A DNA stretch of 63,814 bases, filler included, from Syncephalis fuscata S228 (Eukaryota > Fungi > Zoopagomycota), in the NCBI GenBank assembly GCA_025786725.1. It is 5 parts of 5 records of this genome, joined end to end, with 100 filler letters (N's around TTAATTAATTAA, not from the genome) between each part and the next. Parts side by side here need not be neighbours in the genome. Positions count along the whole stretch, not along the records: positions 9,612 to 25,007 come from JAHLTZ010000216.1; 4 more parts are not named here. The stretch is one strand, 5' to 3'. Of this stretch, positions 9,612 to 25,007 are shown in pieces. The notes beneath the pieces are model-generated. The model saw only the letters and a program-made list of their open reading frames with translations, did no database searches and was not told the origin of the DNA. The translations under genes and the position numbers were made by a program. Position 1 is the first letter of the stretch. The number at the start of each line of letters is the position of its first letter.

Positions 9612-9863
9612 GTTCACATAGACTGGCGTGAATAAAGTAATTTCCGCTTAACTTTGCAAGTAGAAATTTATATATATATTGGCAGCTATGTTCAATCAAC
9701 AAAGCACAAAGTACCACACTATTCTAGTTGTCCATAATTGTCTATTTTATATCCTATTTCCAAATTAACTCTATTATAATTACTTTGAACATACTTCAAC
9801 AATTGTCTATTATTTTCCAATCTACTGATATTAATATCTATTGTTATTATTCGCACAATCATC

Positions 9864-12403
9864 ATGCTGGGCTCCTTATCTTGCAAAAGTTTGGCCTGGT
9901 TGGCGCTGACCCTTGCATCAGCTGCGGTGGGCGTAAATGGAAGCTATAATGTAAGCATCATAAATTATAGCGATTTTATTCTAGCAGTTTTTTAATTTGC
10001 TGCTGTTTTTAGATTGGAGCGGGTATTGCAGATATCACTGGGTAAGTTGAGCTGCTATACAAGTAATTTCATAAGTAATTAACGTTTTTATTTATCATGT
10101 AATCGATCAACAGACCTATCGGTAAGTGCTATAAATTAAAATAACTACGCATTTTATGCTTACTTAAAATATTTCTTACACCATTTAGCCGAGGTAAACT
10201 TCATGGGCTATGCCAATCTTGAACAGAAAGGTGCCGGACTTCGCCAGCGTACCTATTCACGTGCCTTTATTATACACGATACGGAAACTGGCAAGCGAGT
10301 TGTACATGTTACTACGGATACAGGCATGATGTCACAGTTCGTGCGTCAGCGTCTTTTAAAACGCTTAGAAGACAAGTTTGGAAGTGGCGTCTATACACGT
10401 GAAAACGTTATGATTACTGGCACGCACAGTCACTCTGGTCCAGGCGGTTTTCTCGGATATCTGCTGTACGATCTAAGTATACTGGGCTGGATCGAACAAA
10501 CTGCAGAGGCCATCACAACCGGTATTGCACTCTCCATTGAACGTGCTCATCAACGTCTACAACCGGGAAGCATTTCAGTCAATGTTGGTGAGCTGCTTGA
10601 GGCTAGCATCAATCGCTCACCTTCATCGTACGATGAAAACCCGGCGGAAGAACGGGCTCGCTACAAATACAATACCGATAAGGATATGACGCTGTTGCGC
10701 TTCAACGATGCTTCAGGCAAAGGTATTGGACAGCTCAATTGGTTTGCTACTCATGGCACAAGCATGAACAATACAAATGTATTGGTCTCCGGCGACAACA
10801 AAGGGTAGGCGGCTTAAAAGCCATCATAATCGCTACTAATACGATCAAATAGATATGCCGCAATCAAGTTTGAACAAGCAATGAACCCACCAGAAAGTCA
10901 AACTGGCCTTGGAACTGGATTCGTGGCTGCTTTCAGTCAAACAAACATGGGCGATGTTTCTCCCAACATTGAAGGTGCCAAGTGCCTGGATACTGGTCTA
11001 CCTTGTGACTATTTGACAAGTACCTGTAACGGCAAAAACGAACTATGTGTTGCTCGGTAAGCATGTGCAATTCTCTATTTATTCTAGCTAACAACAAGTT
11101 ATTATTTAGTGGTCCAGGATGGAAACAAGGCGATTTTGCCAGTAACCAGATTATTGGCGACCGCCAATATAATAAGGCTCGCGAACTATATGATGGCACT
11201 CCCCAGAAGGTTCTGTCTGGCCCTGTCGACTTCCGTCACATGTATCTCGACATGTCGAATGCACCATTTACTTATGACAACGGCACTACAGGAACCACCT
11301 GTCCAGCTGCCATGGGATACGCTTTTGCTGCTGGCACTACTGATGGTAATGTAGATGCAGACATTTCATTAACATAGTCACTAATATTATATGTTTTGCC
11401 ATAAATATAGGTCCAGGCCAATTCAATTTCTACCAAGGCCAGGATACATCAAATCCATTGTGGAATACGGTTGGAGCTGTTGTTACTAAAGCACCAAATG
11501 CTAAACAAGTTGCTTGCCAATACCCGAAACCAATTCTGTTCAACACGGGCGAGTCACATACGCCTTATGAATGGCAACCAGCCATTATTGAACTACAAGT
11601 ATTCCGCATTGGCCAAGTGTTCATCGTGGGCGTCCCAGCTGAATTCACCACCATGTCTGGCCGTCGCATGCGAGATGCAGTAAAGAAAGCAGCAATTGCA
11701 CAAGGTATTGCTGACGAAAATGCCACCGTGATCATATCCGGCCCAACCAACACCTACGCCAGCTATACCGCTACTCCTGAGGAATATGCTGCACAACGCT
11801 ACGAGGCCGCCTCCACCATCTTTGGCCCAGGATCACTACCAGCCTACATCAAGAACGCAATCAGTCTGGTAGAAGCCATTGGCAAAAACTCGACTGTTAC
11901 CTCGGCACCTGCACCTCCCGATTTCTCCAGCAAATTCATGACTTTACAAACTGGTGTTGTCTTTGACTCTGTCCCACCTGGCAAATCATATGGTAGCATC
12001 AGCACCGATGTAAAATCTTCCTACAACCAAGGCAGCACCGCTCAAGTAATTTTCTGGACCGGTCATCCCAAAAACAATCTTCTTTTGGAACAGAGCTACA
12101 TTTCAGTCGAGCGTCAAGACCCAACCACCAAGGCCTGGACACGCGTGCGTGACGATGGCTACTGGAGCACCCGCTACAAGTGGGACAAGGTTAATGGCTT
12201 GGGCCAAAACCGGGCTGTCATCGAATGGGACATTGAAGCCGATACTATACGTAAGTATAAATATACAAATATTTACTTGTTTTACTAAGCTTTATTTAAT
12301 AGCGGGCACTTATCGAATTCGACACTTTGGACACCACCGCACGGTTTTCCAACAAGTTATTGCACATACTGGAACTTCTAGCACATTTACCGTAACTGCA
12401 TAA
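9864..12403 (+). CDS. Neutral/alkaline non-lysosomal ceramidase (secreted), multi-exon
   Basis: Signal peptide MLGSLSCKSLAWLALTLASAAVG; IGAGIADITGP, MGYA, THSHSGPGG, WFATHGTSMNNTN, catalytic GDVSPN, AAGTTDG, EFTTMSGRR, YEAAST, GTYRIRHFG. Confidence 0.95.
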
Positions 12404-13137
12404 ATTATTTTACGAATGAATATTTTATGGTAATAAATGGTTTTACTTAATAACAAGTTTTATAATAATAAGTAGTTTTGATATCAAATATATATACTGA
12501 GTATATGCGTATTGAATAATAAATCTACGGTGATGAGTGTTTTAATGACTGATATCACTCAAGCTAATAAATCTAAATTCAAATGTTATTAAAATAGGCA
12601 TTTGATCTTAAATTATATTAAATGACTAATGAATTGGTTAATTTAATGTAATTCCATTAACATAAATAATATAAACAAATAAATCGCTAATAGTACTGCT
12701 AAAATAGATCATACAACTAATTGCAGTATGTTAATATTTGCAAATAAAAAGTGTTTCTTTTTAACAATAGTAATAGTATGTGTTGTTTTAATCCTTTAAA
12801 TGAAGCCGTAACAAACAACTGAACAACATGCAATCTTGATATGGCAATCAATTTGTTATGCAATAGCTATTTAAATAGTAACTTGCTTCAATAACTAGAA
12901 TAATAAAGCTAGTTCACTAGTTCTTCCTCGTACATTACAACTAATATCTATAGGCTACTATAATATATTTTAATTAAAGCAATAGCAAATTGAATAGACA
13001 AATAAACAGTTTGTTTGGTTCATTAATTGCAAATAGTAATAATTTTGATTTTAACAAATAAAATGTTGCTGTTTTATTTGGTACCATAAGCTGCGTTTTA
13101 TTAGCTTACAGTACTTTTAATCTCAAATCAAAACACT

Positions 13138-14945
13138 TTAGGCTTGCTTTTGTTTCTTCTGCTTAAGACGCAGTATACCAAATCCATATCTCACGACAGA
13201 AACAAACAGATAGATTGATGTAGCAACAATTAAAAGTATAAAGGCGTATAGATCATAGTTGCCGGCTTTCCACCATGGCATGCGGAAATCCGCACTTTCG
13301 TGTGCTAGAATAGCACCGGAGATGGCGGCCAGCTCAACAAGATCAGCACCACGATTGTGATCACGATTAGCCATATGAAACATACGCTGAAGACGGTTAA
13401 TGTTGGTACGGATCTCTTTAGCTTCCTCCGATCCAGGTGATAGTAGTCGATGGAAGGCATCGCTCAAAGTGTCATGGCTAATCTCCTTCTTAGACAGCCA
13501 TAAACCTGCTTTGTGTTCAGTCATTTTGTTTGCATTGATTATTTGATCACCAAAGCCTGGAAGGCCAAGAACTGGCACTCCAGCGTAAAGTGTTTCGTAA
13601 ATAGAGCTAATCCCGCAGTGTGTAACAAACAGTTGAGTAGATGGATGCGCTAATACAGCACGCTGTGGTGCATTGTCAAGCAGACGAATTACTGGATGCT
13701 TTCCAGAACGCATATCCTCAACACTATGGTCGACACCATCAATGGTAATTGTCTGCGGTATCGATTCTTTGTTATCAGCTGTCCGCACTAATCCCCAGAT
13801 AACACCGTCAAGCAGACCATCTCTATGAGCAGCAAGCAATGAATAAAGTATTTTTGAAACACGATGAATTGGCAAAACAGAGGCAGTCCCAAATCCTACA
13901 TAAACGGTGCGTTTATGGGTATCCAAGAATTCGGCAAGCTCGTCAGGCAGTGCTTCAACGGCATTTGATATGTGCGGACCAATCATAAATGTGTTGGATG
14001 GCAAAGGTTGAGGCGTCTACACAAAAAATCATTAGGTATTATTAAAAGCGCAATCGTGCCATTACCTCAAAGCCAATAAAGCTATTAACCAATATAAATC
14101 CGTGCCTCCAAAGATCCGCGAATCCACTGTATGGTGCAATACCTGCCTTGGACATTGTGACCTCTCTTTTTTTCAAAATTTCTTTTATAGCAAAAAATAC
14201 TTTTCCAGGCAAAATAATTTTGTCGTATAGACGATCAATAAAGCCTACATTCTCATATGTGGGCGGCATAGGCTGCATGTTGTTTGGTATATAAGGTTGC
14301 ACCCCATGGCCTAGATATTACATTGTTACACATAATTACATTCTTTCTAATACACTTACCATATGTTCCCAACATATGTACGGTAATGACAAACGGACAG
14401 CCAACATCATGTGCAGCATCAACACAAGCAGGATTGCTAAAGTCGCATATGATCACGTCAGCCGAGTTGTCACGAATCCATTGACGATAGAATTGAACAT
14501 TTTCAACGTAGTTTTGCATGAGCATGTCAAGCACCCAATTAATTAAGTCCGTTAATTTCATTTCTTCATCAGAAAATAAAGCCTGACGAGACATTTCTAA
14601 AAACATAGCTTTATCCATTGGATTGGCGCCCATATCTACAGGACGTAACATAGGATGGTCCTTCAGCCACGAAGACAACGTATCGTTGTAGCCAGCAAAT
14701 GCTACTTTATGGCCGCGTGCAGCCAGGACATCGCCTATAGATAGCTGGGGCGCTGCATGGGACTTGGTGCCCATCGCAGTGCTAATAAGAACATTCAGCG
14801 GACGGCTGCCGAAGCTGGCGGGTGTTGGCCCAGAAGTATTATGCTTGGTTGGTGCATTTGCGCTTTTAGCGGATATATACGTTGACTTAGAACACAATAT
14901 ACAACTAAGTGCAAGAAAACAAAATAGCAACTTTTTACAAAGCAT
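13138..14945 (-). CDS. UDP-glycosyltransferase (GT1, UDPGT family), 3 exons; signal peptide, C-terminal TM helix and lysine-rich tail
   Basis: N-terminal 'GTKSHAAP...GHKV'; UGT signature 'APQRAVLAHPSTQLFVTHCGISSIYETLYAGVPVLGLPGFGDQIINA'; ends with a TM helix and KQKKQKQA. Confidence 0.92.
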
Positions 14946-15589
14946 ATTGCAGTAACCAACGAATAAACAGTAAAAAGAGAAGTTGGACTCAATTCCTTGA
15001 TAATCCATTCCTTTTCAAAGGCAATGTTCACTCTGGTAAACCTCGTGTTTATCGTTACACCAACGTCGGCATAACATGTACGGTTGCAACGTCATGCTGA
15101 TGATGAGTCAATATGAATAATCTATTAGTGTAAAATATGCTATAATATGGTACGATATTTAATATCACGAATGCCCGTATTTTATTGTATCTAAAGCGTA
15201 AAGTAATTTTATAGCTAATTGAATATAAGAGTATATATATTAATGGATGTTATACCAAAAAGCATTAATAAAATTTTGTAATTGAGTGACGTAACCTTTG
15301 ACGTTACACTATCCACATTCATTGATATGACAGTTGTCAAAATAAAATGATTACATATAAAAACAATATAATCGTAATTACTATTTTTGTAATTAAATCA
15401 TTATATTGCAACCACTGGGCTTAACTATTTATTAAAAGAAATATTAGTATTAGCATTTATAAACTTAAAATACAGTAGGTTATTTTCTGACCTTGATAAT
15501 TAAACAAAAATACAAGTTACATGATAGCAACTGCATAATGATAATATCATACTAATAACAGTATTTATTGTATTAAAGTCAGACTATTT

Positions 15590-16430
15590 GGTTGCACTCA
15601 GTTTAACTTTTCACCAATAATTGATTGTGTAAATGCCTACAGCTTATCGTTTAATTCGGTGTTTTAAACATACTGGGATGATGTGGCTAGTTTTCCATAA
15701 GGAACAAAATATTGGCCGTTGTAGCCTTTCTTTCTAACTTCATCTGATGTGATGACATAGAGGGAAGTAGCGCGCCATCCGCCGTAGAAAGGCCTGAGCA
15801 AAAGAAAAATATACTAAACAACAGATTCCAATTCAGCCAAGAGAATTATATCCGTTTCGTCCAATTTCTGACCTAACTACGCCTGGATGCAGTGAGTTGG
15901 CTAGCACGGCTGATTTGCCATTCTTGGCTACCTCTTTGCAAAATAATTTGCTGTTAGAATGCAAGCTAATTTGGAGTGGCCATATGCCTTAATGGTGTTG
16001 TATGATGCTTATTATTAACCTCGGCCATGATAAGTCGAATACCATTGGTATAGGTTTATTGATGCATCGTGCTTGACGTAAACACAATCTGAGAAGGCTC
16101 TTCAGCTGTGCCGCTGCTTTCAATAGTAGAAGATAAACGCTGTGTAAACAGCGCTGGCCCCAAGTGGTTGACGGCAAAGCGCAATTCGATACCATTGTCA
16201 GCCAGTGTAACGGTACCATCGAAATACCAGTATTATTAACAAGGATGTTGATGCAAGGCTCGACTTCTAAAAGCTTTTTTTGCAGCAATATCCACTTGTT
16301 TAAGATTAGCAAGATTGAGATGCAAAAAGTGGATATCTGGCAGTTTAACTTAATAGGCATGATGATGAAAAGAATAAAAGTAGCGTTTGTTTATAGCAAT
16401 ACAAGCATATAATATACATATATTACCATA
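15590..16430 (-). pseudogene. Short-chain dehydrogenase/reductase (retinol dehydrogenase/WWOX-like) pseudogene
   Basis: ILVNNTGI, 'GIELRFAVNHLGP', catalytic 'AYGHSKLA' and 'NSLHPGVVRSEI' lie in different frames. Frameshift near 16210, TAA near 16057, further frameshifts downstream. Confidence 0.85.
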
Positions 16431-17241
16431 GTTAAGTGTATCAGTGTTGTGTAATAGGCTGATATTTACTTTACTCCCCCCCCCCGCCAGGGCAGTAAAT
16501 CTCTTTACGCAATCAATTGTAATGATTTAGATAGTTGACAAGTTGATTAGATTAAATTGTGTTTAAATGATCATTCACAATAAATACTAATATAATATAA
16601 TAAAATTATTATTTCCATAAAATAGAATTGACTAAATATAACAGAACATTGTATCAGTAATAATATTAAACATTTAAATAAAAAATGTAACATACTATTT
16701 GATTTCATTGAAACATTTGAGGCCAATTGTTGTTGTTGGCCATGCATAGGAAAATTGATTGAATGTTAATAGAAGCCATTGATTGCAATTCTATGCCATT
16801 CTGCATGTGTTGTTGCATCTATGTACATCATTGATTATTATGTCTAAATGGTCTTTTCAATTTTTCAATTTTCTACTGTTGCATTTGGGCATATTTGTGA
16901 TGTAAGATCAAGATTAATATAATTATTATAAATGTCGTTTATTAAACAGTCACTTCCCCTATAGCCAATCTGACTAAATAAATGGTATTTTTAACGATTA
17001 ATATCATAATGACAATGTATATATATATTAAAGCAATAATGAAATGAGTAAATAAAAATGTGAGAGTTAAAGTACGGTGCTCCGTGTAATAATAATAATT
17101 TTAATATATTATAGAAAAATAAAAATAATTGATCTATATAAAACATTTACAAAGATTACTAAAATATACAAGTGAATCTAAAATATAACAGCTTTATATA
17201 GTTAAGCAAACAAATTGTTTATTAATATGATTCAATTATAA

Positions 17242-18783
17242 TTAAATCTTAAGATACCATCCTCGACTATCCATAAGCATGGCCATTGGAACGTACAATA
17301 ACGATACCCATGCTCCAGACCATACCAAACTGTTAAGGCGCATTGGCAACCAACTAGCAAATACATACTGGAATGTAACAGACCATAGACTTCTCTCTTC
17401 TCCATTAGCACCGGGTGCAATTGGAATAGACATGACACTGGCAGCAATCAGTTCAGAGGCCATATAGATGGCGAGTGGATTCTTGCCGACAGCAAGACAA
17501 GCATTCAAAAATAGCTTCGTTGGTTTGGCTACAATAGCCGATGCACTTTCGCTTAATCGAACATAGTCAACGACATATGTCATTGTAGCAAGTTCCATCA
17601 GTGATATTGAGCCGGCGAATAAAGTAAATGTTGGTGTCCAAAGCGGCTTGCTAATAGGAATGACTGGATTGAACAAATAAGCAATTAAAGCAAATCCAGC
17701 CGATAATAAAGACCAAGACGAGATGTGCTGAAGTTGACCAAACGAGCTACGTAGCGCTGTACGAGCACCCATCACCTGTATACCAACACGTACACCAAGA
17801 TAGCAGCTTAGCACTGCAGTCACGTGTGAAAGACTGCCTTCTGGATCAAACGACTTGCCCTGGTAGTTGTGTTCTGGTCCAAAGATATGCGAATCAAAGT
17901 AGGACTCGACAGAACACTCCATATCAAAATGGCCACGACCACAGCCGGGTACATTCACACCAAACGTTAGGCCAAGCCAAATGGCAAGTGCCGTTGCGGG
18001 AAATACCGTATTAAATGCTAGATGGCGCTGGACCCGTTTTGTGCGATGTAACATGGTTTTAACAGCGCCTTGCGTTTCGCCATCACAATCTTCAGGTTCT
18101 TCTGTCGTTGGTGGTATATCCGGCCGAAGCCATGCAAATGCACCGGCACACACAGCGTAAGCTATACCTAAGCGCTGCAACACACCGGCCGGTCGCCAAT
18201 GAGACGCAATATTGGGTGTTGTAAAGGGAAAGTTTGTAATGAACATGCCAAGTAGGATTAATAACGAAGAACGTTTCATAATACGCACAGCGACCTGCAT
18301 CCCCGTGCCTTTAAGCCGACGGCCGGCCAATGGTACAGCAAGCCCCATAACAAAGAGAAAATTGGGAAAAACGGAGTCAGCAATTGAGAAGCCAAGCCAT
18401 TCAGGATGTAACAAATAGGAGAAGGCTTCATCTTCAATTTGGTAGTTCACGAGAATCATTAGGCAAACGGTAAAGCCACGCAATACATCGAGCGATACGA
18501 GTCGACCGTTACCACCATCACCGGCGGGAGGATTGGGCGCAGTTGATGGTGGTGGCAATACGGCTTCTGTGTCATCCGTCATTTCAGGATTTGTGTAATA
18601 ATCATTTGTTTTTTCATTAAGAACAGTATGGTTGTTGGCTGTCTCTGATATTATGATGGTGGTGTTTTCTTGCTGTTCCGACCGCGTCACATTTTCATTA
18701 ATGACTGCAGTAGCCTCAATGGATGGTGACGACGGACCAGTTGTGACGGCGGTGGTAGAGACGGCCATCGTTGGATCAGCCAT
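17242..18783 (-). CDS. Heparan-alpha-glucosaminide N-acetyltransferase (HGSNAT/NagX)-like membrane acyltransferase, intronless
   Basis: RLVSLDVLRG, 'LHPEWLGFSIADSVFPNFLF' (His-containing motif), GVLQRLGIAY, FDPEGSLS, PISKPLWTPTF; many TM helices. Confidence 0.9.
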   Translation of the reverse strand: MADPTMAVSTTAVTTGPSSPSIEATAVINENVTRSEQQENTTIIISETANNHTVLNEKTNDYYTNPEMTDDTEAVLPPPSTAPNPPAGDGGNGRLVSLDVLRGFTVCLMILVNYQIEDEAFSYLLHPEWLGFSIADSVFPNFLFVMGLAVPLAGRRLKGTGMQVAVRIMKRSSLLILLGMFITNFPFTTPNIASHWRPAGVLQRLGIAYAVCAGAFAWLRPDIPPTTEEPEDCDGETQGAVKTMLHRTKRVQRHLAFNTVFPATALAIWLGLTFGVNVPGCGRGHFDMECSVESYFDSHIFGPEHNYQGKSFDPEGSLSHVTAVLSCYLGVRVGIQVMGARTALRSSFGQLQHISSWSLLSAGFALIAYLFNPVIPISKPLWTPTFTLFAGSISLMELATMTYVVDYVRLSESASAIVAKPTKLFLNACLAVGKNPLAIYMASELIAASVMSIPIAPGANGEERSLWSVTFQYVFASWLPMRLNSLVWSGAWVSLLYVPMAMLMDSRGWYLKI

Positions 18784-19025
18784 AGTAAAAAATCTTTACG
18801 GTGGTTATTACAATAAGCAAGTTAGAAAAAGAATAAAATCAAGTCGTTAACTGTGTCCAAACAATTCATACATACGTTAGAGGAGAAAAAAAGAAAGGGG
18901 TACTTTTTCTACTTGGTAACATTAAGTAGCGGATCCTTTACAATAAATAGATGAATCCTGTGTTTTTTTGTTGTATGTAACCCTACCAACCGGTTACTGC
19001 ACTATACTACATGACATGGGCATGT

Positions 19026-19686
19026 GACTGTATAGAATATTCTACAGTTACGCAATAGATATCATTTATTAAAATTGTCCAATGCAAATAAAACGTCATG
19101 TGGGAAGAATGTGCACGGTGTCAGTAGCCTGTTTGCAGAGTCATTAAACAAAATAAGAAACATGACTGCAAAGCAGTTGAATTGTGGAGACAACAATGAA
19201 TTTTATAACAATAATGCTTATTATAGTCTTTAGCTATTCTTTCTATTATATTCATTAATTTAAGGAGGATAGAAGTGTAAAGAAATACTGATGTAAATGT
19301 CTATAATAAACAACAATGACTATAATAGTTTTCGGCTTAATACTTGCATAATAAAACATTTAATTTTGATTAATTTACTACGTTTTTATATCAATTCCAT
19401 TGCTTTATTTTTACGTAAAGGCTCTACATAGCATATTAAACTCATTTGTTCTACACATACATGTACAATACACAATAGTTTTTTAGTTAACTATTGCTTT
19501 ATTTCTAGTACCTATAAGAGTAATTGACTAAAACTTGGATTACAAAATTTATACGTTGCGTGACCATCAGGTCTATTATTGCTACACCAGGAAAGTAGCA
19601 ATATGAACACACGACTCTATAGAATATTCTAATGTTACGCAACCAATGTCATTTATTAGAATCGTTTAATGCAAATTAAATGTCAT
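19026..19686. repeat. ~70-bp diverged direct repeat (19026-19099 / 19613-19686)
   Basis: 'tatagaatattcta...gttacgcaa...tcatttatta.aat.gt..aatgcaaat.aaa.gtcat' in both places; the second copy overlaps the stop codon and 3' flank of the SPX-PSP gene. Confidence 0.75.
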
Positions 19687-21890
19687 ATAGCTGTCGTGCA
19701 TCCCCATCTGTATAACCTAGCAGGTAGAGCACATATTTGAGACTTTTTTGGTTAATACGTGCTCTTGCCTGTTCTTGTACGCGAGGCTTAGCATCGAATG
19801 CGATGCCTAGGCCAGCCTTGGCCAACATCCATAAGTCATTGGCACCATCTCCCACAGCGACTACTTGGTCAAGTGACACCGATTCTGCCTGAGCAATGAC
19901 TTCAAGTAGCTCAGCCTTGCGTTCCCCATTAACGATGGGTCCCACAGTCTCTCCAGTCAATGACTGGCCATCTGGTGTCGTCTTTAGCTAATACGTCATG
20001 GTTTGCATTACCAATTAATTATCGGCATGGCTGGCCATCATTTCTAGTACTCACCTGGTTGGCAAATGCATAATCGAGACCCAGTTCATTTTTGACAAAA
20101 GTTGCAAGTGGCATAAATCCACCTAAATAAAATGGTGTTAGATTAGAAAAGGTAAATAAATTAATATTAAAATATCTACCAGAAATAACCGCCAACTTGA
20201 ATCCAAGTCGTTTAAGTGCTCTACATAGATAGTGTGCGCCCTCTGTAAACGTCAGTTGATCTCGAACTTGTGCGAGTACTGAAGTTGGCGTGCCTTTCAG
20301 TAGTGCAACACGACGACGTAATGATTCGTTAAAATCAATCTCTCCATTCATTGCTGCCTCAGTGATAGCCTATAATTATAATGATATATTAGCGTTTATC
20401 ATTTAATTGCTACATTATTGTGATTGTTATTCAGCGCAATTACTAACCGCTACTTTGTCCATAACACCGGCATGTCGTGCAATCTCATCAATAACCTCTT
20501 GTTGAATAAGTGTTGAATCCATATCAAATACCACAAGTCGCTTGTTTCTTCTGAATACATTATGCTGCTGTAGAGCAACATCTGTGGCGTGTTGTGTACT
20601 TAGCTGGAACAGCTTTTCACGTAGTGCAACAAGATCAACATCATTAGGTACACTGAGCTGATAGTCAGCACAGCACACACGGCCAGCATTGAGGCGGGAC
20701 ATCTTTTCGACGGAAATACGTTCGGCAAGTAGTAGTTTCGTCCAATCGTTAAGAAACGTTGCTGTAAGCCCATGTCGATTCAGTACAGTAGCTGCATATT
20801 TAACACGTCCAGCATAAGGTGCTTCCTCAATCGACTGAGTAATGGCTGAATGATCGCTGTTATGCGGTTCAAACTGTAATTGGGCATCCCATTGGCGTGC
20901 GGCTTCAGCCAGATCGCGGAATAGCTCGACCCGTTCATCGGTAAGCCGTAGTAGTGCAGCAAATGTTACTTGATGATAAAGACGACTCAACATGAAATCT
21001 TCAACGTCGGCCGCATAACGAGCTGCACAATCGAGTACACAGCCAATGATGTCGGTACCGTGCGGACCTGACATAGTAACCAATATACGCTGGTGAGGCA
21101 GTTGCGACGCAGGTGGAAACCAGTTCTTGCGCTCATCGTTACCCATTCGTTCTACGATTGAATTTGATGGCAATAGCGCATCGGCCACTTCTTCAACGGC
21201 ATTTGGCACAGTTGTAGTAATTGAAGGGTCAACCGTGGCTGCAGCGACTGCTTGTTCCGCTGCTTGTACAGCTGAAATGGTGGGCGCAATAGCACTGGCC
21301 ACAATGCTGGCATCATGGGCCTGATCAACTGTCGTCTTTATACTTTCCAATAAACGTTGCTTCCACGTACTTAGTGGCTGAAAACGTACAAGTGGCGTCA
21401 CAGCAATACGTAATAAATAAGTTTCGCCTAAACATAGGCCCGTATAACGATCGTGCTTTTTTAATATCTTGGTAATGGCCGTGTAGTTAAGAAATGCGAA
21501 TGACTCGACCTGTACAATACAACGCAACGCATCCGATGTTGTAAGCTTGTTAGCTGCAAATGCCTCGGCTGCTTTCGCCACTTGATAGCAAACATGCTCG
21601 GAAGCACGCGCCACTTCCGTATCCAATTGATGGAAGAACTGCGGTACCGTTTGCTGAAGCGTCGTTAACCTTGTGGCTAATTGCGTGCCAAATGACTCTT
21701 TAGCCAGTTCGGGCCCGTCTGGCTTGCTGTTCGCCGTATTGGTGGGCAATAGCGCGTTGAGGTGTAGCGAACCAGGCTGCAACTTCTCTTTAATAAACCG
21801 TTTAAGATACGTATAATTGACACACGCTGCCTTCCAGCTATCTTCCGGCAGCAATTCCTTACGCTCTTCTAAATACTTTGCAAACTTCAT
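19676..21890 (-). CDS. SER2: SPX domain - ACT - ACT - phosphoserine phosphatase (SerB-type HAD) fusion, 4 exons
   Basis: SPX: MKFAKYLEE, NYTYLKRFIK, FLNYTAITKILKKHDRY. ACT-like 'ILVTMSGPHGTDIIGCVL'. HAD motifs FDMDSTLIQQEVIDE, AMNGEIDFNESLRRRVALLKG, ISGGF, RKAELL, GDGANDL. SPX through HAD motif I is one uninterrupted exon (21890-20448). Confidence 0.93.
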
Positions 21891-22349
21891 GTTCTTTAGT
21901 AGTTACAAATGAAAAAGAAAATAAAGCTACGAGAAAGTATGACTGTGCGAATCTAATAAGCTATTCCAACGCCGATTTCATATCATTTAATCTAACATCT
22001 GATTCTATTGATTAACACTTAATCGACAGTCTATTTAGCACTCCTATTTGTTTATTGCTAGCTATACAGTTAATGTTTAATAACAATATTTCCTTTATTT
22101 ATTTCTTTTAATTAGTGTTAACTAGTTATCTAATTAGCACTTGATAAAAATAACAAGTCTAATCAATCAACGATTTATTTAATTTACTATCCACTTATTG
22201 ACATATATTTAATCAATAAATAATAGTAATAAATCTTGATTCGATATTTTTATTAATACTAATGGTCATTATTATTATTTATTGAAACATATCATCGTAT
22301 TACTAGCTATTTCTACTCCCTTTGAATCTATCGACTAACTTTACAAACT

Positions 22350-24096
22350 ATGGCTACACCAGCTGCTGTAACTGAGCCACTAAGTGTGGTTGATATTGCT
22401 CGTAATGCTCGTCTAGCTTCTACTGAATTACAATCGGTAACTGGTGCCACTAAATCACTGGCGTTGAAGCATATTCAAGCGGCGTTGCTTAGACATAAAG
22501 CAACCATTATTGCTGCCAATCAACGCGACAAAGAAGTAGGTAGCGGTGGTGGCAGAGAAAGAATACAACCTCTAATACTAACAACGACGTATACAATAAC
22601 AGCTTGCAAAGATCGAGGTGGATGCAGGTCGGTTATCGGCCTCACTATTCAAACGACTCGATATCGAAGGAACCAATGAGGAGAAGTTTATGACTATGGT
22701 TGAAGGGGTGGCCGATGTCGATAAACTAGAGGATCCAACTGGCAAGTATAGTGTTAATGTAGAAGGGGACCAGTCAACGTATTACTAACTACTCGTCGGG
22801 TTGTAGGTCGAGTAAGTATGGCGACCAAATTGGACGACAATCTCGAATTGTATCGTGTAGCCTGTCCTGTTGGTGTTTTATTAGTTATTTTTGAGGCACG
22901 TCCTGAGGTGGCAGTTAATATTTCAGCATTGGCCATTAAGTCGGGTAAATAATAGTATTATTTAGTATTGGCACATTTATCAAATGTCTAATACGAACAC
23001 TAGGTAATGCGGTAATTCTTAAGGGTGGCAAAGAGGCTACTCATACACTACAAGCACTGAATATCTGTTTAAGAGAAGCGCTTAATGACTTGCCAGCTGA
23101 ACATTCCATTCCAGCGGATGCCGTCCAACTAGTATCAAAACGTGAAGAGATTGCCGAACTGTTAGATCAAGATAAATACATTGATATGGTTATTCCTCGT
23201 GGTTCCAATTCGTTGGTTCGTCATATTCAAAATAATACACGGTAAGTGGTCATGAGTCTTGTTTACTGGTAATTAATACTAATCCTTGGTTATAGTATTC
23301 CAGTATTGGGACATGCTGATGGACTATGTTCTATTTTTATTGATGAATCAGCCGATATCGATAAAACGATTAATGTTGTATTAGATGCTAAAGTACGTAA
23401 CAGTGCACTATTGCCGTATTTAATACTTACTCTATGTATAGCTTAGCTATCCTGCTGCATGCAATTCAACTGAGACACTGCTTGTTCATGCTAAAGCTGC
23501 TGAACGTGTATTGCCGTCCTTGGGTGCGGCACTTTATGCACAGCAAGTACAATTACGTGCCGATGATACTTCACGTCGTTGTTTGCCTGTACCCGACAAT
23601 CCTCAACTATTAAAACCAATTGCTGATGAAGATGATGATACGGAGTTTTTAGATGCCATTCTTGCCGTAAGAGTGGTTGGCTCATTGACCGATGCCATTT
23701 CACACATCAATACACATGGCTCAAAACATACAGATGCTATCATGACTGAGGAGAGGGCAAATGCCGAACAGTTTATGACTCAAGTGGATGCAGCAGGTGT
23801 CTACTGGAATGCATCAACTCGATTTGCCGATGGATTCCGTTATGGATTCGGTACAGAAATTGGCGTAAGTTTTGTTTTGTAAAATGTAGACCATATATAC
23901 TTATATACTATGGATAGGTAAGCACGAATAAGACACATGCTCGTGGCCGGTTGGTTTAGAAGGACTTGTTATTTACAAGTATCGCGTTTACGGCAACGGA
24001 CAAGCATCGGCCGCGTATGGCGTGGGAGAGGGCAAGCGACGCTATTTACACGATGCCATTCCATTGGAAACATGCGAGAATCGTTTCCGTAAATAA
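22350..24096 (+). CDS. PRO2: Gamma-glutamyl phosphate reductase (glutamate-5-semialdehyde dehydrogenase), multi-exon; apparent 1-nt deletion near 23947
   Basis: [100 protein letters not shown](P)VGLEGL. Confidence 0.95.
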
Positions 24097-24240
24097 GAAT
24101 TGTTTATTTAACTATTGATATATTCCAATTGAATGAATGATTTGCGCCTATTTCTAATCTACACTATATCAATATAAATAATGGTGTCTATTTTATTTCT
24201 AGTCTCTACTAAACAATTGTTCTAGTTGATATTTGCATCT

Positions 24241-25007
24241 ATGGATGAATCTAGTCTATACAAAGATATATGGTATATTTACAAAATGTGTTGCTATTTG
24301 TCATATTGACATTGGTATTTACTAGGCTAGCTGCCATACTTGGTACTCGATCAGCGTTGCGTCGAATGGCTCGACGACACCTAGAACGAGTACAAGTGTC
24401 ATGTGCTTGGTAAGACCACTTAAGCAATAGTTATTTTTACTATAAATATATACTATAGCGAATGGATAATACAACGCATTGAAGTGACAACTCTCCGTAT
24501 ATCTGCTCATCTTTTATATGGCACTGCATTAATTCACGACCAACAATGTGAAAAGATCTATGGTAAACAATCAATATGGCTAATGTTGCTATTGCTAATA
24601 TCTATATTGTAGCTGATGCACACCAGTTATCATTAAATATTAAAGATGCTCTTTTATGCAAGAAATTATCTACTTATCCATATACAACAATTGAACGAGC
24701 AAGGTAATAGTTATTAAATTAATTGATGATATTAGTTTTTTACTTTATTATAGATTCGACACTATTACCATTTCTATGCCGACTTTTCCATTCTTCTTAT
24801 TAGCATCGTATAATCATATCTATCAAGTATATATTATAACAATAATCTATAGTAATCTATAACAACTAACGTTGGCCATTAGCCACAATGGTGTTTTATG
24901 GCTAGTCAGTCTACATTTACAAAGACTACTACCATGTATTCAAGTGAGTTTATTAATATTATACCTATGTATATTGATATATTGTGACAATAAAATAATT
25001 AGAAGAA
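24241..25007 (+). CDS. REC8: Rad21/Rec8 kleisin N-terminal domain (Rec8-like), 5' part only
   Basis: Spliced translation MDESSLYKDIWLAAILGTRSALRRMARRHLERVQVSCACEWIIQRIEVTTLRISAHLLYGTALIHDQQCEKIYAD matches the Rad21_Rec8_N pattern (IWLAA...LRxSxxLLYG...QQC). Confidence 0.75.

Follow-up and report, generated by a model that had tools for sequence, protein, structure and literature searches.

In a 63,814-nucleotide stretch of DNA from Syncephalis fuscata S228 (hereafter the window) we found a gene encoding a 670-aa protein in which an SPX domain is fused to a phosphoserine phosphatase (PSP) of the ACT-ACT-HAD type, distributed over four exons according to our open reading frame (ORF) and splice reading. 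This SPX-PSP fusion has been conserved in almost every fungal lineage outside Dikarya. We consider it probable that the SPX domain subjects the ACT-gated phosphatase in cis to control by inositol pyrophosphates (PP-InsP), and hence by the inorganic phosphate (Pi) status of the cell. The gene and its parts are located in the window as follows, with the basis of each reading in brackets.

19676-21890, minus strand: whole coding sequence (CDS) with three introns and stop codon (ORF and splice reading; near-identical to NCBI protein P0001; RNA contigs over 19681-21899)
20448-21890, minus strand: exon 1, 481 codons, with SPX, linker, ACT1, ACT2 and HAD motif I (frame reading, hidden Markov models (HMMs))
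21309-21890, minus strand: SPX domain, aa 1-194, a helical bundle (PF03105, domain model, Foldseek)
21801-21815, minus strand: N-terminal SPX ligand residues Y26 and K30, equivalent to Vtc4 Y22 and K26 (motif reading against Vtc4 numbering, PMC9911596)
21447-21470, minus strand: SPX basic cluster K141, K144, K145 and R148, equivalent to Vtc4 K129, K132, K133 and K136 (HMMER alignment; PMC9911596)
21120-21308, minus strand: Ala-rich disordered linker, aa 195-257 (low predicted local distance difference test (pLDDT) score, poor conservation)
20856-21119, minus strand: ACT1, aa 258-345, beta-alpha-beta-beta-alpha-beta (PF13740, secondary structure, Foldseek match to M. avium SerB2)
20556-20855, minus strand: ACT2, aa 346-445 (alignment to SerB2 residues 111-180; ACT-type secondary structure)
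19679-20555, minus strand: HAD-IB phosphoserine phosphatase domain, aa 446-670, with three introns inside (TIGR00338, PF00702, PF12710, catalytic motifs)
20511-20525, minus strand: HAD motif I, DMDST, with nucleophile D456, D458 and T460 (sequence; conserved in 59/59 family members)
20370-20447, minus strand: intron 1, 78 nt, GT..AG (splice reading; skipped in RNA contig)
20123-20179, minus strand: intron 2, 57 nt, GT..AG, splitting the Gly545 codon of HAD motif II (splice reading; skipped in RNA contig)
19988-20054, minus strand: intron 3, 67 nt, GT..AG (splice reading; skipped in RNA contig)

The ATG at 21890 opens a frame of 481 codons that is free of stops as far as HAD motif I, and its translation has the canonical SPX start MKFAKYL. 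Exons 2-4 continue the SerB motifs in frame and complete the HAD domain up to the TAA stop at 19678-19676. An initial annotation made from the DNA alone had given the same coordinates, and had described a first exon running uninterrupted into the HAD domain that the next three exons finish; our ORF and splice reading agreed exactly with both. The database counterpart of the gene is the 670-aa Syncephalis fuscata protein P0001, which is matched exactly by the translations of exons 2, 3 and 4 (residues 482-544, 546-567 and 568-670, respectively). The exon 1 translation is near-identical to it and shows allelic differences, e.g. P57 in the window and L57 in P0001. Window exons were searched singly, and full-length analyses were run on P0001. 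The source piece of the window (9612-25007) is contig C131 of the 29.4-Mb assembly. This 15.4-kb contig duplicates positions ~365400-368700 of contig C112 with 99.4% identity (18 substitutions and 2 indels over 3.3 kb), and the two copies are most likely unmerged haplotigs of what is, in this genome, a single locus for a SerB-type PSP.

RNA-derived contigs from a public run (X1) follow the spliced form of the gene. They skip exactly the three predicted introns and therefore derive from RNA; one covers 19681-21080 and the other 21082-21899, ending 9 nt upstream of the ATG, and together they cover the CDS. The one-base break between them, at 21081, corresponds to a C/T difference between the window contig C131 and the C112 copy. 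De Bruijn assemblers break contigs at allelic bubbles, and because the break coincides with this allelic site it is an assembler break of this kind and not a transcript boundary. At most variant sites the RNA contigs agree with C112, and one such site is where they break, which suggests that both alleles are expressed. In two further phyla the entire SPX-to-HAD ORF was found uninterrupted on one contig, namely in Mucorales (L012, 2058 nt) and in Neocallimastigomycota (L014, 2303 nt). The nearest genomes, Helicostylum and Piromyces, have one and three introns, respectively, which the contigs skip, and both contigs are therefore spliced single mRNAs carrying the whole fusion. The check for a single transcript that the initial annotation had proposed came out in its favour, with RNA contigs that span the CDS, introns removed, and a single-nucleotide polymorphism (SNP) between alleles as the sole break. 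Nor did any of the sequence-level findings that it had named as contrary to its reading appear, the SPX HMM being positive.

It might be argued that annotation or assembly merged two adjacent genes. We found no support for this, the sole gap in RNA coverage being the one base at 21081, and that gap falls on the allelic SNP. One stop-free exon of 481 codons holds everything from the SPX domain through the linker and the two ACT modules to HAD motif I, whole fusions lie on single spliced mRNA contigs in the two other phyla, and the same architecture recurs in more than 100 species. An artefact of this kind is effectively refuted, and we give it next to no credence.

The catalytic part of the protein is recognizable as a SerB-type phosphatase by several lines of evidence. 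P0001 matched the serB equivalog model TIGR00338 over residues 437-657 with 267.2 bits (cut-off 144.15) and PF00702 with 82.8 bits (26.4), and PF12710 also matched. All residues of HAD motifs I (DxDxT), II (S/T), III (K) and IV (GDGxND) are present (D456, D458, T460, S544, K591 and G613-D618) and are conserved in 59 of 59 sequences of an alignment of SPX-PSP members, from which all conservation counts given here and the family model were derived. Foldseek gave template modelling (TM) scores, by target, of 0.92-0.95 to the M. jannaschii PSP, including the cap, and of 0.86 to SerB2. The match to M. avium SerB2 extends over approximately residues 260-670 (405 columns, 36% identity), and a sequence search against SerB2 returned E = 4e-63. 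Identity to characterised PSPs amounts to 36-47%. The protein is predicted from its sequence to be an active PSP, the only one of SerB type in Syncephalis fuscata. With SerC also encoded in the genome and no second PSP locus, the flux through the phosphorylated serine pathway should depend on this enzyme.

The N-terminal domain in exon 1 matched PF03105 with 45.6 bits, above the gathering threshold of 27.8. Its start is well kept across the family, with M1 and K2 in 57 of 59 members and F or Y at position 3 likewise in 57. Modelled alone, the domain reached a pLDDT of 92.7 and a predicted TM score (pTM) of 0.86, and the top 46 PDB matches of this model in Foldseek were all SPX domains (XPR1, OsSPX1, Vtc4 and Gde1), with TM up to 0.76. 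In Vtc4, inositol hexakisphosphate (InsP6) is recognized by a phosphate-binding cluster (PBC; Y22, K26 and K133) and a lysine surface cluster (KSC; K129, K132 and K136), and mutants in either cluster show lowered InsP6-stimulated activity (PMC9911596). Residues 118-168 of the Syncephalis protein align without gaps to Vtc4 106-156 (HMMER), and by alignment Y26, K30 and K145 are the equivalents of the PBC and K141, K144 and R148 those of the KSC. Y26 and K30 are each kept in 58 of the 59 family members, the remaining row being a gap in either case. K141, K144 and K145 are lysine in all 59, and position 148 is R in 51 and K in 8 members. The SPX domain as a whole is conserved to ~57%, the linker to ~17%. 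The Syncephalis fuscata genome further encodes IPK-family kinases and about nine additional SPX loci, and therefore possesses a PP-InsP signalling system. Since the contact residues are kept in a domain otherwise conserved to ~57%, and since these kinases and SPX loci are present, binding of InsP6 or PP-InsP by the SPX domain is likely retained.

Between the SPX domain and the phosphatase lies a stretch (aligned aa 179-258) that varies from 31 to 80 aa across the family and has a conservation of 0.17. A full-length AlphaFold2 model built from the 59-member alignment had a mean pLDDT of 83.9 and consisted of a helical SPX domain, a disordered linker (pLDDT <50 for residues 192-256), two ACT folds (268-343 and 362-442) and, C-terminal to these, a HAD domain. 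ACT1 was also detected by PF13740 (ACT_6) at residues 268-340 with 26.1 bits against a cut-off of 23. Its loop G275-I281 is invariant, which is only suggestive with regard to L-Ser feedback or ACT-mediated oligomeric switching. The domain order proposed in the initial annotation was recovered in every part: the SPX domain (MKFAKYL start, PF03105 above cut-off, SPX-only fold matches) with its lysine cluster TKILKKHDRY, the Ala-rich linker (aa 195-257, disordered in the model), the two ACT modules (ACT_6 HMM, two modelled ACT folds, SerB2 alignment over both) and the SerB-type HAD domain, for which serB equivalog HMM, catalytic motifs and PSP fold were all positive.

With exon 1 as query, over 100 named proteins that combine SPX, ACT and HAD domains were retrieved. 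These came from Zoopagomycotina (Syncephalis, Thamnocephalis), Entomophthoromycotina (Basidiobolus), Glomeromycotina (Rhizophagus, Diversispora, Ambispora, Geosiphon), Mortierellomycotina and Mucoromycotina (Endogone, Umbelopsis, Rhizopus, Mucor, Phycomyces), Chytridiomycota (Spizellomyces, Phlyctochytrium, Rhizophlyctis and others), Blastocladiomycota (Paraphysoderma) and Neocallimastigomycota (Piromyces). An exhaustive search of representatives added Coemansia and Smittium (Kickxellomycotina), Catenaria and Sorochytrium (Blastocladiomycota) and Saitoella (Ascomycota, Taphrinomycotina). Neither search showed an SPX-PSP outside Fungi. In Saitoella (P0245) residues 1-180 form a degenerate SPX domain (22 bits) that has kept KILKKHDR and has Thr at the K30 position and VRF in place of MKF. 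This protein may have been caught midway in a loss of SPX that leads to PSPs of the Dikarya type. The suggestion of the initial annotation that the architecture may exist in other early-diverging fungi was borne out, and more widely than it had guessed, with nearly all non-Dikarya lineages and, in degenerate form, Saitoella. We rejected long PSP-containing representatives (800-1150 aa) as further SPX fusions, as these are tandem ACT-HAD duplications without SPX. PSP-containing proteins of 770-1150 aa (P0248, P0250, P0252-P0262 and P0268), mostly from transcriptomes or metagenomes, look like such duplications, with an N-terminal ACT_6, a partial HAD domain in the middle and a C-terminal ACT_PSP_2 with HAD.

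A query with ACT2-HAD retrieved relatives without SPX: ACT-ACT-HAD proteins in Gigasporaceae and Dimargaritales, shorter PSPs in many chytrids, an aphelid and Pezizomycotina (294-349 aa), red-algal SerB2-like proteins with 51-56% identity, and deltaproteobacterial SerB with ~52%. No SPX-like coding sequence was present within 6 kb upstream of the PSP gene in Gigaspora rosea, Batrachochytrium salamandrivorans or Morchella snyderi, and these SPX-less models are therefore probably real losses rather than truncated annotations. Some short entries of Coemansia and Rhizopus are partial, because full-length SPX forms occur in the same genera. In a maximum-likelihood (ML) tree of ACT2 and HAD, computed for 52 hand-picked rows to the exclusion of other hits and rooted on three bacterial rows, all fungal PSPs formed one clade (Shimodaira-Hasegawa-like approximate likelihood ratio test, SH-aLRT, 92) that was sister to red algae. 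SPX-less forms were nested within SPX-bearing groups, such as Gigasporaceae beside Diversispora and Coelomomyces inside Blastocladiomycota. The tree holds at least six changes of SPX state, of which strongly supported branches force only two, and on its own it does not separate gain from loss. Given this nesting and the occurrence of the fusion across phyla, the simplest interpretation is that SPX and PSP were fused once, at or near the base of Fungi, and that SPX was then lost repeatedly, including in almost all Dikarya. The view of the initial annotation that tandem-ACT SerB is the bacterial architecture stands as far as bacterial SerB2 is concerned and falls as an exclusive statement, the architecture being found in red algae and in many fungi as well, the latter as one eukaryotic clade. 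SPX-less PSPs (Batrachochytrium, Synchytrium, the aphelid, Pezizomycotina, Bifiguratus and Calcarisporiella) were seen on much longer branches than SPX-bearing ones. These could reflect relaxed or shifted constraint after loss of SPX and ACT1, or merely fast-evolving lineages.

Public records label the fusion proteins automatically as phosphoserine phosphatase or HAD-like. No description of the SPX-PSP fusion was found in the literature searched, which included a full-text survey of arbuscular-mycorrhizal fungal nutrient signalling and did not extend to most subscription journals, where an earlier mention is possible. We class the fusion as a new, uncharacterised combination of two known kinds, i.e. 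SPX-regulated proteins and SerB2-type PSPs.

On the enzyme side, the closest known system is mycobacterial SerB2 (M. avium and M. tuberculosis; PDB 3p96, 5is2 and 5jlp), which shares the ACT1-ACT2-HAD order and the catalytic motifs but has neither an SPX domain nor a long N-terminal tether. PP-InsP signalling is not known from bacteria. The red-algal SerB2-like PSPs (Porphyridium, Galdieria, Gracilariopsis; ~440 aa) have the ACT-ACT-HAD order and form the sister clade to the fungal PSPs, but are likewise devoid of SPX. The Ser2-type PSPs of Dikarya (Morchella, Kalaharituber, Orbilia, Arthrobotrys; 294-349 aa) belong to the same fungal clade, with 50-60% identity over ACT2 and HAD, and act at the same pathway step, whereas SPX and ACT1 are missing and their branches in the ML tree are long. 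On the side of the SPX domain, Vtc4 (an SPX-TTM polyphosphate polymerase) and Gde1 (an SPX-ankyrin-GDPD glycerophosphodiesterase) also combine an N-terminal SPX domain and its basic PBC/KSC surface with a catalytic domain of phosphate metabolism, and Foldseek matches of the SPX model include 5iig and 5ijj. The Syncephalis protein differs from them in that SPX is joined to a soluble HAD phosphatase of amino-acid biosynthesis that carries an ACT regulatory module itself, in that SPX identity is just 15-21%, and in that the third KSC position in the SPX-PSP family is usually Arg and not Lys. The best structural match to the SPX part was XPR1 (PDB 8tyu, and 8tyv with IP8; TM 0.69-0.76), a membrane Pi exporter gated by its SPX domain, whose body, however, bears no resemblance to a PSP.

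In the phosphorylated serine pathway, the enzyme would catalyse the final step, in which Pi is released. By analogy with mycobacterial SerB2, whose regulation involves L-Ser-driven oligomeric transitions in which the ACT domains take part (PMC10564941), the ACT1-ACT2 module probably governs both the oligomeric state of the enzyme and its feedback by amino acids. The SPX domain on its flexible, disordered tether of 35-80 aa would most probably report Pi status to the enzyme in cis via 5-InsP7 or 1,5-InsP8, and this signal would shift the ACT-dependent oligomeric or conformational equilibrium or the access to the active site. In Vtc4, the SPX surface binds InsP6/PP-InsP and stimulates catalysis (PMC9911596). 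Serine flux and Pi release from phosphoserine would thereby be tied to Pi availability. That PP-InsP and an amino acid might together control the enzyme had been suggested by the initial annotation, and this suggestion is strengthened because the ligand-contact residues of the SPX domain are fully conserved. As to direction, we lean weakly towards PP-InsP-bound SPX restraining the enzyme under Pi-replete conditions and loss of PP-InsP upon Pi starvation releasing it, because restraint at high PP-InsP would be expected for a Pi-liberating step. It has been argued that Pi limitation favours reactions that release Pi (PMC7864628).

Other roles of the SPX domain have to be weighed against control in cis. 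The domain might act in trans, recruiting or releasing a partner or a location in a PP-InsP-dependent manner, with the PSP body as cargo or metabolic input and no direct allostery. Plant SPX1, for example, binds PHR transcription factors in a PP-InsP-dependent manner, and SPX-partner complexes were among our fold matches (7e40). The conserved ligand surface, a long disordered tether that would suit the reaching of partners, and the lack of confident intramolecular docking in the model would all fit such a role. No candidate partner emerged, however; the neighbouring genes are unrelated (ceramidase, glycosyltransferase, HGSNAT-like and aldehyde-dehydrogenase-family genes), and most SPX domains fused to an activity regulate in cis, such as those of VTC, XPR1 and Pho90; we regard action in trans as unlikely. 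Less probable still is a purely structural SPX domain, with a part in oligomerisation, stability or solubility, for instance, and none in the sensing of inositol pyrophosphates. Several SPX losses without loss of the enzyme and the degenerate Saitoella copy with Thr at the K30 position speak for it, but such a role would not keep surface lysines invariant, and the six ligand positions are kept across the 59 aligned members from long-diverged phyla while the rest of the SPX domain is conserved to ~57%.

The HAD domain, too, might have a substrate other than free phosphoserine, e.g. phosphoproteins, in which case the SPX domain would serve a different pathway. The effector functions and multifunctional moonlighting of M. 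tuberculosis SerB2 to which PMC10564941 refers lend this some plausibility. Against it stand the serB equivalog score far over the cut-off, the 36-47% identity to characterised PSPs, and the lack of any further PSP gene in this genome, which retains SerC, and we think it very improbable.

Several observations count against PP-InsP control in cis or limit its force. For the whole family, PSP activity, ligand binding, an effect of SPX on activity and the direction of that effect are inferred from sequences and models. The full-length model had a pTM of only 0.53 and no confident geometry between SPX and body, and a predicted complex of SPX (1-192) with ACT-ACT-HAD (258-670) scored 0.00, a result that is neutral on intramolecular contact. 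Several lineages have lost SPX and yet retain the PSP, and SPX is therefore not needed for catalysis. An additional SPX-less isoform from an internal start may exist and would be compatible with the contig data. The ligand of the ACT module cannot be transferred from SerB2, whose L-Ser-contact residues E33, R103 and T136 are specific to the M. tuberculosis protein, and we dropped this comparison. Finally, Pho4/NUC-1-type E-boxes (CACGTG and variants) were absent from the 459-bp upstream region of 25% GC, which is uninformative for the PHO regulon of Zoopagomycota.

The other genes on this piece of the window were as follows. At 10203-12285 (plus strand) lies a multi-exon neutral/alkaline ceramidase gene (PF04734 with 292 and 178 bits, PF17048 with 130 bits), and at 13141-14004 (minus strand) the C-terminal part of a UDP-glycosyltransferase (PF00201, 87 bits). 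Upstream of the latter, an ORF at 14256-15008 (minus strand) had no Pfam match and may be its N-terminal part. Directly downstream of the PSP gene, a single-exon ORF of 513 aa at 17242-18783 (minus strand) showed a weak match to HGSNAT catalytic/DUF5009 (32 bits), its product being a multi-pass membrane acetyltransferase-like protein. Divergent from the PSP gene across the 459-bp intergenic region is a multi-exon gene at 22350-23900 (plus strand), one exon of which had a weak aldehyde-dehydrogenase-family match (E = 9e-4); we presume that it is possibly of the glutamate-semialdehyde dehydrogenase type.

Characterised SPX domains are found on Pi transporters, the VTC polyphosphate polymerase, Pho81, Gde1, RING ligases and stand-alone regulators, all of which belong to phosphate homeostasis proper. 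The carriers of the fusion include arbuscular-mycorrhizal Rhizophagus, the mucormycosis agents Rhizopus and Mucor, oleaginous Mortierella, rumen fungi and several chytrid orders, while the short, related PSPs of animals, plants and almost all Dikarya lack SPX. The fusion is experimentally reachable because Mucor, Phycomyces and Mortierella have genetics. As the protein is soluble, tests of SPX allostery in vitro should be simpler than for membrane-embedded SPX proteins, and the repeated, nested SPX losses provide natural comparisons. We put forward, tentatively, the wider possibility that in the fungal ancestor and in most non-Dikarya fungi PP-InsP directly and allosterically gates an amino-acid-biosynthetic enzyme, so that one polypeptide integrates Pi status (SPX) and amino-acid status (ACT-ACT) and sets serine and one-carbon flux as well as the recycling of Pi from phosphoserine. 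If this is true, work centred on yeast and other Dikarya would have missed the SPX/PP-InsP branch because Dikarya lost the SPX domain, and PP-InsP signalling would extend directly into central amino-acid and one-carbon metabolism via the committed, Pi-releasing step of serine synthesis.

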